From: Podarcis filfolensis | Taxonomy: Eukaryota | Length of the DNA: 64,000 bases | Strand: one strand, 5' to 3' | Assembly: GCA_964270895.1 (NCBI GenBank) | Contig: OZ185435.1 | Shown here: one piece after another, positions 19,517 through 23,807 of the stretch | Layout of the letters: every line of letters starts with the position of its first letter | How positions within the stretch are numbered: position 1 is the stretch's first letter | Notes under the pieces: generated by a model | Told to the model about the DNA's origin: nothing | What the model saw: the letters and a program-made list of their open reading frames with translations, nothing else | Databases searched by the model: none | Translations under genes and position numbers: made by a program

Positions 19517-19996
19517 GTGCGGCGGGAGCAAAGAATAGAAGAATTGGCAAGAGGGAAAGTAATATTGGACCCACAATAAGAAGAGTCATGACAGGGGTGG
19601 CGAGGGAGAGAAGACAACGGCAACAGAAAGCTGTGGCCAACACAGTCCCAGCCTCTGCAGCAAAAAAACCCCCCCACCCATCTCTGGCCCTCATCAAATG
19701 TTTGCAAGCTTTGCTCAACACCCATAAGAGTTAAAACATGAGATGTGAGCCAAGACCTTGCAACTGCCCTGCTGAGTGCCAAGTGCCGTGCCTGTAGGAT
19801 GGATGCATAGAGCAGACAGAACAGTGGGGATGGGGAAGAGGCATGCAAGTGTGAAACAGGAAAGGAAGGGGAAGATCTCGCTTCTTACATTACTAGGTGA
19901 TTTGGGTTGAGGGGCTTTTGCTGCCTGTGACAGATCAATTAGTTGGTGCAAGTACACTTCAGAGGTGGCACCTCCATTTGCATTTCCCTAAGAAAC

Positions 19997-20133
19997 TCAA
20001 AGGAGGTCGTCGTAATAATACTCCTCAAAATTTGGCTCATCCCGCTTGCTTTTGTGTGCTTTTTGCAGCTTTTCCGATTCCTTCCGCTGTATCCGTCTCC
20101 GGAAGTTGGGCATCTTTGGTTTAATGCCATAAT
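19997..20133 (-). CDS. FREY1: FREY1 exon 3 coding part (137 nt)
   Basis: gtcttcacag|AT TAT GGC...CTC CTT TGA; YGIKPK...KRDEPNFEEYYYDDLL*. Confidence 0.93.
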
Positions 20134-23100
20134 CTGTGAAGACAGGAGCTAGTAAGAGAAGTGTGTGGCAATGGCAGGGCAGGAAGAGAAAAAAATCACA
20201 TAGGAGGATGTGGGAGCGAAGGCTCACATGGCCCTAAGAGGGGCATATTATGGGATCCTCGAGGCAGTTAACTAGAAGGCAGGGTTGGGGAAACTGGAGG
20301 AGGGATTCACCTACTGAGCGCTGCCAGAAGAAGCTCTGTGCAAAGACTTCTGCCTGCACAATAGGGCTTTCCCCTCTCCTCCCCCTGAAATTGGATCGTG
20401 AGAACCTCATGCAAGCTGAGGAGAGGGAGTGTGGTTCAACTGGCACACCAAAATGCTTGCAGTGATGCAGTGATAAGAGCGGCACATGGGGTTCCTCCAA
20501 TGTTGTTGGACTCCAGCTCCCATAAGCCCCAGCCAGCATGGCCAGTGGTCAGGGATGATAGGTGCTATGGTCTGGCACCATTTCAAGGGCACCAGGTTGC
20601 CCACCTGTGCTCTAAGGATTGACTTATTTGAACCAACAGGGCATTCTAGGGTGCTTAAGGCACATGGTTGTCATGTTTGCTAGTCAGTTTAGACTTCTTG
20701 GCTTAATAAGCAACAGAGTCTTGCCTTATCCACTTCTGCCCACCTCTCCCTACAGAAACACATTCAAATTGCTTCCATTCCATACAGACTCAAATGAGGG
20801 GCTGAAATTGATAGAGGGGTGCTTTTTCTTTCTTTCTCTTGAATCCAGAAAATAGATGGTGCAGCTGGTCATGGAAGAAAACTCAGTGATCTGATACAGC
20901 TGGGTTTTGTTGTAGGCGATGATTAAGAATAATAATGATATCGATAATAATACTTATTAGTTGCTCTCTCTTTTACAAAAAGTCAACTCAAAATTTTGTT
21001 TTTATTTATTAAATTTGTATACCACCCTTCATCTGTAGATCTCAAGGAGGTTCATAGCATAAAAATACAAGCTAAAAATACATAATAAAAAGAAAGAAAG
21101 CAATAAAAAGCCTTCCCACAAACACATTTAAAAGGATGTTAATCAGCCAAAGGCCTGGTTGAAGAGTAACATTTTTGCTTGGTGCCTAAAGGTGTATAAT
21201 GAGCCTCCCTGTATAATGAGCTTTCCACAAATAGGGAGCCACTGCAGAAAAGGCCCCTTCTCATGTTGCCGCCCTCCGGACTTCTCATGGAGGAGGCACA
21301 CGAAGAAGGGCTTCAGATTATGATCACATGGTCTAGGTAGGTTCGTATCCCATGCACTAAAGGAGGGAACAGTATCTAAAACTCTCCAAGTTAAAGGCCT
21401 GGCTGAATGGCAATGTTTTTGCCTGGTTCCTAAAAGTAGCCAGTGGCAGTACTAGGCAGAGCTTTCCATAATCAGGGAGCCACCACTGAAAATGACCATT
21501 CTTGTGTTGCCACCCACCTCACTTTCCTTGGAGAGGGCACACAGAGGACAACCCCAAACCACATATGGAGGATCCAGGTTGGTTCATGTTGGGGAGAAGC
21601 AGTCCTTCAGCTGCATAAGGCTTTATAGGTCAAAACCAGCCCTTTGAATTAAGTTCAGAAATTTGGTAGCTGGAACAGTGACGCCAGAATAGATTTGAAA
21701 TGCTCAGGCCATCTTGCACTGGTCAGCAATGTCTCTGCTGCAGCTTTCCCTACCAACAGATCCCCAAGATGTTGGATTATGACTCCCACCAATCCCCTAT
21801 GATTACTTTTGCTGCCCAGGAATAATTGGGCTGTAGTCCAATGACATCTGGGGACCAAAAATTGGGAAAGGTTTCTCTTCTAATAACCTGGAAGGTACTT
21901 CTTTTTTTCAACTTGTGCCTATATATTGACGATCCCTTTGCCCAGAGATAAGGACTACAACTCCCATCAGCCCCAGCGAGCATAGGCAAGGGTCAGGGAT
22001 GGTGGGAACTGTAGTCCATCAACATCTGGAGGGTAACACATTGGCTCTCCTTGCCCTATGCTGTTGCGTAGTAGGAACTGGAAGGAATACATGCCATCCA
22101 CCAGGCCAAAGTGCTGCTGCTGGAGCTCCAGGGGTGCAGAGAATTCCTCTGGGACAGACGGACTGAGCCTGCTGCAGAAGAGGACAAGGTCAGGAACTGC
22201 GATGGTTGCTGCCTAAAGCCCTGATCTTATGGACTATTAGCGCGGAGGGAGTTCCCCACGTGGTTATTTCAAAACACCTTCCCAGCCAAATAATAATTTA
22301 TAAAACAAAGCACAGAGCACTAGCCCAAATGTGCAATTAAAACAAGTGCAAGTGCCTATAATAAATCCCCCGTAGTTAAAAAAACTTGCCTCCAAACCTT
22401 AACATATCTTCTTGATCAAGGAATTATAGATGTAATCAAATCACATTTTGAAAATGCAACTATTTAAAACCTTATTAATTAATTAATTTTATCTGTTTAT
22501 TACATCACTTTCCATTTATAATGTCTTGTTTGAAAAGCATATACAGACCCAAAAGATGGTGGATAACTCTGCAGTATTTATTGAAGATCTTATTTTCGTA
22601 TCGCCTGTGGCCCCATTTCCACACACCCCTTCTGCATCTTTCTTCAAGACATCCAGCAATGCAGTGATTTGAAGCATTTATCATAATCAAGGGGTTTGCA
22701 TGAAAATCTAAATTCTCCAAAGAAATTTGACTTGATACATCTATGAAGTGGTTCACTATACCAAAACAGTGATGGCCATTACACTAAAATGCAACATGAA
22801 AATCATGCTCTGATTCAGTCCAGTGCTGTTTGGTTAACCCTGGTAAAATTCTGTCTAATGATACTCTTTGAGGCCTCCCTTCCTTTGTTTAGTCCCCCAA
22901 CAAACCCTGAAGAAGAATGAGCATAAGCCACATACTGCGGTTTTCTTTTCTTAGTGCCAGCAGGAGCAAAATATCCCTAAAATGTGCCTGCTGACAATTT
23001 CAATAGGAATTAGGGCATGTGAGATGGGTTGATCTACCCAGATGTTGAGCCTTTGGAATATAATCCTACTGCTAGCTGTTGTTTTATATTTGGCAAGAGT

Positions 23101-23417
23101 TTCCTTTGAGAAGGGGTCATGCACTGAGACTTAATGACTATCTCTGATTTAACCTGCTGCCATGAATCCTTAATAAAGTGTACCTGATTCCTAAAGAAAG
23201 GCAGGCAAGTGGCTTTTATTTCAAATGACCCACTTTTCTTCACCCTCATTCCATGCCATATCTGGGTGGCAAGAGTCAGGTATACAATTCATTGTACACA
23301 TTTATTTATTTTCCCCTAATGGAGAATGCAGGACCACCAAGCAGTGTTTTACCTTTGAAGACTTGGCATGGACAGCCCTCTCTCTGTGAGGAGAAGCAAC
23401 AGAAGCAGGAATCCCAT
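19997..23417 (-). CDS. FREY1: FREY1 / C11orf94 orthologue, complete, 91 aa; complement(join(19997-20133,22095-22168,23353-23417))
   Basis: Spliced product MGFLLLLLLLTERGLSMPSLQRLSPSVPEEFSAPLELQQQHFGLVDDYGIKPKMPNFRRRIQRKESEKLQKAHKSKRDEPNFEEYYYDDLL. It matches remembered human motifs SVPEAFSAPLEL, GLVDDYGILPK and KRDGPDLAEYYYDAHL. It has the syntenic position and strand between MAPK8IP1 and PEX16, and the phases (2, 1) join in frame. Confidence 0.92.
21000..21660 (-). mobile_element. Two degraded L2 3' fragments
   Basis: tttatttattaaatttgtataccaccc tail; ttccacaaatagggagccaccactgcagaaaagg; ctttataggtcaaaaccagc. Confidence 0.6.
21720..22055. mobile_element. Two adjacent degraded palindromic MITEs in FREY1 intron 2
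   Basis: ggactacaactcccatc...gatggtgggaactgtagtcc cores at ~21745-21885 and ~21935-22050. Confidence 0.7.
22095..22168 (-). CDS. FREY1: FREY1 exon 2 (74 nt, or 77 nt from 22171)
   Basis: ttctgcag-cag| acceptor; RLSPSVPEEFSAPLELQQQHFGLVD G|gcatgt (GC donor). Confidence 0.9.
23353..23417 (-). CDS. FREY1: FREY1 exon 1 coding part (65 nt)
   Basis: ggccggATGG, first ATG after an in-frame TGA 42 nt upstream; MGFLLLLLLLTERGLSMPSLQ AG|gtaaaa; phase 2 fits exon 2. Confidence 0.82.
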
Positions 23418-23807
23418 CCGGCCAGTCAAATCCAACAATGGTACTCTTATTGGCTTTCAGCAATGGAACTTAAGACAGCTCCCAGTGCCTACAATGCCAT
23501 CACAAAGGGTAAAGAACACACAGCATTCTGACTCCTAGGTAATGGGCCTGCCCAATGGGGCCAGCCTAAGAATGCAACTTGTGCAGCCCGTTTGGAAAAA
23601 GTGTCCTCTCAGGCAAAGTTGCATGCTTCTACAGCTCTTTTAGCTGAGCCCCGTTTCAGAGAAACAAGCTTGACGTACTTTCTCACCAGGCATAGTTGAT
23701 CCTATGCCCACTTTCTTTCCATGAAGTCACATTCTCTAGGAACAAGAGGAGAGCCCCAGCTTATGCGCCAGCCAGGCTTCAGTAACACAGCATCAAAGTA
23801 ACTAGTA

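Follow-up and report, generated by a model that had tools for sequence, protein, structure and literature searches.

The Frey gene and its C-terminal exon

The stretch of DNA analyzed here (the window; 64,000 nucleotides of contig OZ185435.1 from Podarcis filfolensis, assembly GCA_964270895.1) carries on its minus strand the lizard orthologue of FREY1/C11orf94. FREY1 is a small protein of the testis and of the early secretory pathway, and in mouse it is required for sperm-egg fusion, as only a few known proteins are. The gene itself is known and annotated; what is new here, modestly so, is conservation at the level of a C-terminal motif, together with signal-peptide-like N-termini outside mammals. 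The window gene resembles mouse FREY1 (C11orf94/1700029I15Rik, Pfam PF15878) in having three coding exons (Table 1), the lumenal blocks and the same C-terminal motif save for QRKR in place of KSKR.

Table 1. Coding exons and C-terminal features of the Frey gene in the window
Feature	Position	Strand	Remarks
Frey coding exon 1	23353..23417	-	ATG 23417-23415; MGFLLLLLLLTERGLSMPSLQ plus 2 bases; short hydrophobic core (~10 residues), signal-peptide-like
Frey coding exon 2	22095..22171	-	carries block 1 (SVPEEFSAPLEL, conserved) and the first part of block 2 (FGLVD); from tblastn with P0001 and RNA joints
Frey coding exon 3	19997..20133	-	DYGIKPK block, basic linker, KSKR, acidic Tyr tail, stop 19999-19997
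Basic linker MPNFRRRIQRKESEKLQKAH	20054..20113	-	variable save L70 and A73; net positive throughout
K75-S76-K77-R78 dibasic (K-x-K-R) site, candidate proprotein-convertase site	20042..20053	-	P1' = D79
14-residue acidic tail DEPNFEEYYYDDLL	20000..20041	-	E-Y-Y-Y-D cluster, YYY codons 20020-20012; candidate TPST site or lumenal docking motif

The exon 1 translation is 100% identical to Podarcis muralis Frey (P0001) in tblastn, and the exon is followed by a GT donor at 23352-23351. Exon 2 begins at either 22171 or 22168 (a tandem NAGNAG acceptor) and ends at 22095, followed by a GC donor. Upstream of exon 3 lie a polypyrimidine tract and an acceptor AG (20135-20134), and the exon starts at 20133 in phase 1. 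Its translation (20133-19997) is (D)YGIKPKMPNFRRRIQRKESEKLQKAHKSKRDEPNFEEYYYDDLL, followed by TGA; the frame up to this TGA (19999-19997) ends ...NFRRRIQRKESEKLQKAHKSKRDEPNFEEYYYDDLL, and the last part of the exon (20053-20000) encodes KSKR plus DEPNFEEYYYDDLL before the stop. An earlier note on this DNA had placed a dibasic site and a 14-residue peptide at 20000-20053, and that placement is exact, with KSKR at 20053-20042 and the 14-mer at 20041-20000.

Contigs of four public RNA runs from two related organisms were placed on 19800-23500. Contigs over 19800-20134 cover exon 3, and the joint from 20133 to 22095 is found in all four runs, the skipped ends reading CT..GC as expected for a minus-strand GC-AG intron; the joint from 22167 to 23352 (GT-AG) is found in the two runs with high exon and low intron depth. 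These joints at both introns imply that a Frey mRNA is made and is spliced according to the three-exon model. P0001 scores 65.7 bits against the Pfam Frey family (PF15878; cut-off 28.3), which places it within the family, and the exon-3 peptide alone scores 26.1 bits (E = 1.3e-5). Translated, the three exons match the Podarcis lilfordi/raffonei proteins P0139 (92 aa) and P0137 (91 aa) without a difference, and it was on these database proteins that the full-length analyses were done.

Conservation of the dibasic site and the tail

Word-index searches, an exhaustive phmmer search and a cluster look-up together yielded 142 Frey proteins: 28 from squamates, 4 from turtles, 1 from an alligator, 91 from birds (including eight bird-like fragments), 12 from frogs, 1 from a newt and 5 from mammals. 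Column statistics were calculated over 122 unique C-terminal exon peptides. The earlier note had proposed that the linker drifts while the acidic tyrosine core, the dibasic site and the length of the peptide are kept, and the alignment bears this out: column entropies at the site are 0.33 bits for K75, 0.07 for K77, 0.17 for R78 and 0.26 for D79, versus mostly 1.2-2.6 bits across the linker (P56-A73), where the exceptions are the invariant L70 and A73; a 14-residue tail is present in 127 of the 142 proteins, spread over seven tetrapod lineages. Judged by these alignments, conservation of the dibasic site and tail is above chance. Column identities tell the same story, with K75 in 116, K77 in 121, R78 in 119 and D79 in 118 of the 122 peptides and, within the tail, E85 in 115/122, Y87 in 117/120 and D89 in 111/120; the DYG residues, P53 and L70 are further invariant or near-invariant exon-3 columns.

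Positions P4-P1 of the site read K[ST]KR in all squamate, turtle, alligator and newt proteins and in 11 of 12 frogs (the remaining one has ESKR), and QRKR in all five mammals. KR itself is present in 136/142 proteins, the exceptions being three with KSKH, one with KSQR and two truncated models. This retention across tetrapods is stronger than the earlier note had guessed, and the loss of the site across amniotes, which that note had named beforehand as the outcome that would speak against it, is not seen. The three KSKH proteins, with His at P1, come from birds of separate orders and have intact tails; the tail of the KSQR protein is otherwise intact too. Asp occupies P1' in 137/142, with Asn or Gly in a few proteins whose tails are otherwise intact. 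Almost all of the 142 proteins have two or three tyrosines in the tail; the third is replaced by Asp or Glu in many birds, and the only near-invariant one is Y87. In squamates, turtles, the alligator and amphibians the tail has a net charge of -5 to -7, compared with -2 to -4 in mammals, and some bird tails are also less acidic; the linker (counted from residue 9 of the exon-3 peptide through K-x-K-R inclusive) carries +4 to +11 in all clades. The manatee and rabbit proteins end in QQRKR-DGPDMAEYYYDA(H/P)L, and the mouse Frey epitope as published ends in ...QQRKRDGPNMAD; all three agree with the human end, QRKR-..., that the earlier note gave.

The last 18 residues are the most sharply conserved short motif in the C-terminal third of Frey, over ~350 million years of tetrapods. 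They belong to a set of three conserved lumenal motifs, SVPE[DE]F.APLEL, GLVDDYG..PK.P and, at the C-terminal end, K.KRD..D...E[YL]Y.D..[LFM], and the two blocks N-terminal to the linker are conserved as strongly as the tail. When the 44-residue exon-3 peptide (20131-20000) was compared by phmmer with 1.84 billion representative proteins, there were 10 matches, all of them tetrapod Frey proteins or Frey-like fragments, and none was bacterial; this search therefore lends no support to the bacterial origin that Hao et al. suggested for C11orf94.

N-termini outside mammals

Mammalian Frey proteins have an N-terminal extension (M..MLGALYPRAG...) before the hydrophobic stretch, and it carries a Pro-Arg motif; in the mouse, this transmembrane Pro11-Arg12 inhibits SPPL2c. 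The squamate, bird, turtle and frog proteins (P0001-P0136) have neither the mammalian extension nor Pro11-Arg12, and their hydrophobic cores start right after the Met and are 7-16 residues long. The window lizard, unlike the mouse, has a core of ~10 residues, too short for a standard membrane span, followed by T-E-R-G-L-S; the small residues at -3/-1 (G-L-S before M17) fit a putative signal-peptide cleavage site. As a usual rule, an h-region of 7-15 residues belongs to a cleaved signal peptide and an anchor needs ~18 or more. Judged by sequence, the N-termini of Frey outside mammals resemble cleavable signal peptides rather than anchors in the membrane, and what was found for the mouse anchor may not hold for the window lizard. 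The type II anchor and SPPL2c inhibition may be mammalian innovations: the short core and the missing SPPL2c motif outside mammals suggest that the mouse model describes a derived state.

Six frog proteins (P0011, P0037, P0043, P0051, P0058 and P0073) carry a furin-type R-A-R-R just before block 1 (IPLDFEAL), at a position where the remaining clades show no more than one or two basic residues. The mouse residue at this position, R30, contacts SPPL2c.

Predicted disorder and the context for cleavage and sulfation

AlphaFold2, given a 97-sequence alignment, predicted an N-terminal helix (residues 3-15) and a short helix (68-72), with the rest devoid of secondary structure (pLDDT ~60), including everything from residue 73 onward. 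The lumenal part of Frey is best read, on this model, as disordered with short linear motifs, and the K-x-K-R site would be within reach of proteases and sulfotransferases as well as of binding partners.

Within five residues on either side of each tyrosine in EEYYYDD there are four acidic and zero basic residues, and there is neither a Cys nor an N-glycosylation site nearby. As a rule of thumb, TPST sites are acidic, unstructured and free of nearby basic residues, Cys and N-glycans, and the predicted tail has all of these features. Furin prefers Arg at P4 (the R-X-K/R-R rule). With Lys or Gln there, the Frey site departs from this consensus and is not a good furin site, which agrees with the survival of the tagged C-terminus in HEK293T cells described below. 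As far as sequence can tell, the prerequisites for convertase cleavage and for tyrosine sulfation are present.

Published properties of mouse Frey

Mouse Frey is testis-specific; it is present in round spermatids, disappears after that stage and is absent from mature sperm, and its loss blocks sperm-egg fusion or binding. It is a type II membrane protein, with its C-terminus in the lumen or outside the cell. An NIS site at the C-terminus carries a fully EndoH-sensitive glycan, meaning that the Golgi has not been passed, and the protein co-localizes with calnexin and not with ERGIC-53 or GM130. Antibodies from two groups target the C-terminus (one with the epitope quoted above, which runs across the proposed site, the other against aa 81-99), and both detect the testis protein; with the aa 81-99 antibody, Frey is found solely in the Triton X-114 detergent phase. 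Overexpressed 3xFLAG-tagged Frey is found solely in the carbonate-washed membrane fraction, and in Lu et al. a C-terminal 3xFLAG is displayed, still cell-attached, on the surface of intact HEK293T cells. A Frey transgene with a 12-residue PA tag at its C-terminus restores fertility and the IZUMO1 level, even when present at trace level. Swapping the entire lumenal domain lowered only SPPL2c binding, in an assay that had no fertility readout. As to partners and location, Contreras et al. found that Frey binds Izumo1 physically and retains it in the ER, Lu et al. detected no Frey-IZUMO1 interaction in testis and found that Frey stabilizes OST subunits, and Hao et al. placed Frey at the developing acrosome, a post-Golgi location.

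The TPSTs are trans-Golgi network enzymes. Tpst2-null males are sterile through loss of ADAM3/ADAM6, with sperm that adhere poorly to the egg and show fusion that is increased, not absent, and their IZUMO1 is normal; the sulfotyrosine signal on sperm overlaps the location of IZUMO1, which is itself hardly sulfated. PCSK4 is germ-cell restricted and required for normal male fertility, and the defect in its knockout is not a fusion block: capacitation and the acrosome reaction come too early, zona binding is poor and ACRBP is misprocessed. Neither knockout copies that of Frey, although compensation, by TPST1 or by other convertases, is conceivable. The Frey literature searched makes no mention of Frey sulfation, of convertase processing or of the tail peptide sequence, and the primary Frey papers do not discuss the C-terminal motif.

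Possible roles of the tail

The role that we favor for the tail, with confidence only slightly better than even, is that of a docking motif acting while still attached to intact Frey. In this bipartite charged site, K-x-K-R as a basic clamp and the acidic-aromatic patch that comes next would together bind a lumenal partner while acrosomal fusion proteins are being assembled and held in the ER. Both the motif's service as a binding site and the choice of partner, for which IZUMO1, the OST subunits and TMED4/10 are candidates, are what we infer as most likely. The sequence, gene model, conservation and predicted disorder come from this analysis, and the mouse papers supply the lumenal topology, the location in the ER and the finding that the membrane-bound protein keeps its C-terminus. 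Since sequence alone cannot separate the readings of the tail, it is the mouse biochemistry and genetics that set their ranking. The motif bears on how Frey holds and releases IZUMO1 complexes.

Docking is favored by the mouse data, in which C-terminal antibodies and tags stay with a membrane-bound ER protein and the PA-tagged form rescues; by the islands of conservation (over the 122 peptides and 142 proteins) in a chain predicted to be disordered; and by the three KSKH birds, whose tails are intact. Five observations pull the other way: the swap of the entire lumenal domain in the mouse work affected only SPPL2c binding; the exact 14-residue spacing and invariant KR-D are what a processed peptide precursor would show; the acrosomal location in Hao et al. 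and the surface display in Lu et al. imply that part of the Frey pool does pass the Golgi; a free 14-mer would be invisible to Western blots; and, given the signal-peptide-like N-termini of non-mammalian Frey, the mouse anchor data may not transfer to the lizard.

It is also conceivable, although we think it unlikely, that the tail is sulfated and never released: TPST1/2 would O-sulfate one or more tail tyrosines on a post-ER fraction of Frey, and the acidic tail would then bind in cis with high affinity. The acidic surroundings of each tyrosine, with no basic residue, Cys or N-glycosylation site close by, would suit this, as would the near-invariant E85, Y87 and D89, the lumenal topology in mouse, the predicted disorder, the presence of some Frey at the cell surface or developing acrosome, and the sperm sulfotyrosine that coincides with IZUMO1 while IZUMO1 itself has hardly any. 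There are precedents for such a tail: the C-terminus of fibrinogen gamma-prime, GPIb-alpha, PSGL-1 and hirudin all have sulfated, acidic, Tyr-rich disordered stretches that dock electrostatically without being cut. The Frey tail is likewise acidic, Tyr-rich, terminal and predicted to be disordered, but those proteins transit the Golgi and act extracellularly, whereas Frey is mainly in the ER and its sulfation is putative. The same mismatch of compartments, trans-Golgi enzymes against an EndoH-sensitive and mainly ER-located substrate, counts against sulfation in general, and so do the differing defects of Tpst2-null sperm (ADAM3/ADAM6 lost, fusion increased) and Frey-null sperm, the absence of Frey from mature sperm and the fact that just one tail tyrosine is near-invariant.

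Cleavage could instead serve as a switch, an idea to which we give roughly one chance in ten. PCSK4, furin or PC7 would cut after K-x-K-R as Frey-cargo complexes exit the ER, freeing the cargo and starting the disappearance of Frey, with the peptide as a by-product. Such a step would fill a gap, in that Contreras et al. call the release of the assembled Izumo1 complex unexplained, and the timing is suggestive, with Frey gone after round spermatids and PCSK4 both germ-cell restricted and relevant to fertility. The near-invariant KR-D has an extra basic residue at P4 (sauropsids and amphibians) or P3 (mammals), and the site is predicted to be disordered and accessible. Against this, a truncated form of Frey is not reported in the literature, C-terminal tags stay cell-attached in HEK293T cells, P4 is Lys or Gln and not the Arg that furin prefers, P1 is His in three birds, and the Pcsk4-null phenotype is not a fusion block.

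The earlier note had gone further and read Frey as a prohormone-like precursor from which a convertase frees the 14-mer, tyrosine-sulfated and bioactive in the acrosome or male tract. We regard this as very unlikely, although the architecture fits: a signal-like N-terminus and a pro-region that varies come before a conserved dibasic site, and the conserved peptide at the C-terminus has a fixed length. The non-mammalian h-regions, beginning right after the Met, have lengths typical of cleaved signal peptides, and the R-A-R-R ahead of block 1 in frogs would also suit a precursor. In a protein-language-model search, the whole lizard Frey lies, after its own family, near the DH31, UTS2B, PDH, NPFF and CCK precursors (0.87-0.90), but without the N-terminal 22 residues this likeness falls to noise (0.80-0.88, with unrelated top matches); because it is lost in this way, we read it as a generic resemblance among small secreted proteins. 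The upstream blocks, conserved like the tail, argue that the "pro-region" is not dispensable, the 12-residue PA tag at the C-terminus is compatible with rescue, no receptor or target is known, and the literature searched prints no tail peptide and draws no link between Frey and sulfation or convertases. The mouse membrane and ER data cited for docking apply here as well.

The note's interpretation is thus partly supported. The sequence prerequisites for a sulfopeptide stand (KR-D, acidic tyrosines, a lumenal location in mouse and predicted disorder), but the release of a bioactive one is unsupported, and the mouse record argues against it as the main fate of the tail: antibodies to the C-terminus recognize a membrane-bound protein, the glycan placed there is EndoH-sensitive, the PA-tagged transgene rescues, and the Tpst2 and Pcsk4 phenotypes differ from that of Frey.

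Two classes of peptide precursor invite comparison with such a scheme. Frey shares with the cholecystokinin/gastrin-type precursors its small size, its place in the secretory pathway and a conserved dibasic site that adjoins tyrosines in an acidic context, and the language-model resemblance to them is weak. It is not homologous to them in sequence, however, and it lacks both an amidation signal and a second cleavage site flanking the peptide, which would end at the natural C-terminus; its upstream blocks match the peptide in conservation, and in mouse it is bound to the ER membrane and not in secretory granules. The plant PSK, PSY and RGF/GLV precursors are 80-120 residues long; they start with a signal, vary in the middle and end in a conserved Asp-Tyr-containing peptide that is sulfated and released by subtilases. 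Their layout is similar to that of Frey, but they belong to another kingdom and show no homology to it, and release, demonstrated for the plant peptides, is hypothetical for Frey.

An evolutionary version of the precursor idea, equally a long shot in our estimation, confines release to non-mammals: sauropsid and amphibian Frey would be a soluble precursor that loses its signal peptide and is cut at the KR, on the pro-acrosomal route, by a convertase of germ cells, yielding a 14-residue Tyr-sulfated peptide. On this view mammals would later have gained the anchor, along with the Pro-Arg motif that inhibits SPPL2c, in what had begun as a secreted fertility peptide.

A KDEL-type C-terminal ER-retrieval signal might be expected in an ER-resident protein with a lumenal C-terminus (in mouse) whose last residue is nearly always L, F or M, and birds even have an internal RDEL, but this reading is extremely improbable: the last four residues (DDLL, DAHL, DARL, DDIM or DNVL) do not match [KRHQSA]-[DENQ]-E-L, which rules out a KDEL-like signal by motif test, position -2 is not Glu or Asp and has an entropy of 2.5 bits, the RDEL is internal and not conserved, and C-terminally tagged Frey is still located in the ER and rescues. 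Cytosolic sorting motifs (YxxPhi, acidic dileucine) were dropped from consideration, the tail being lumenal in mouse.

Splice sites and repeats

The donor of intron 2 (22094-20134, minus strand) is GC (G/GCATGT) and not GT, in agreement with the RNA joints in the four runs. Several public gene models, among them P0010 from Lerista (GLVDGMYSFQF...) and P0104, appear to run past this GC donor, which would account for their odd insertions. The exon 2 acceptor CAGCAG (22173-22168, minus strand) gives isoforms with and without Ser22, 92 versus 91 aa, and such pairs are present in the databases for both Podarcis (P0139/P0137) and Lacerta (P0141/P0142); the distal acceptor fits RNA contigs from one of the two related organisms. 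Four stretches of the intron (20420-20667, 21164-21287, 21536-21659 and 21908-22031) have contig depths in the thousands with many loose ends and cross-joints, the pattern expected for high-copy interspersed repeats.
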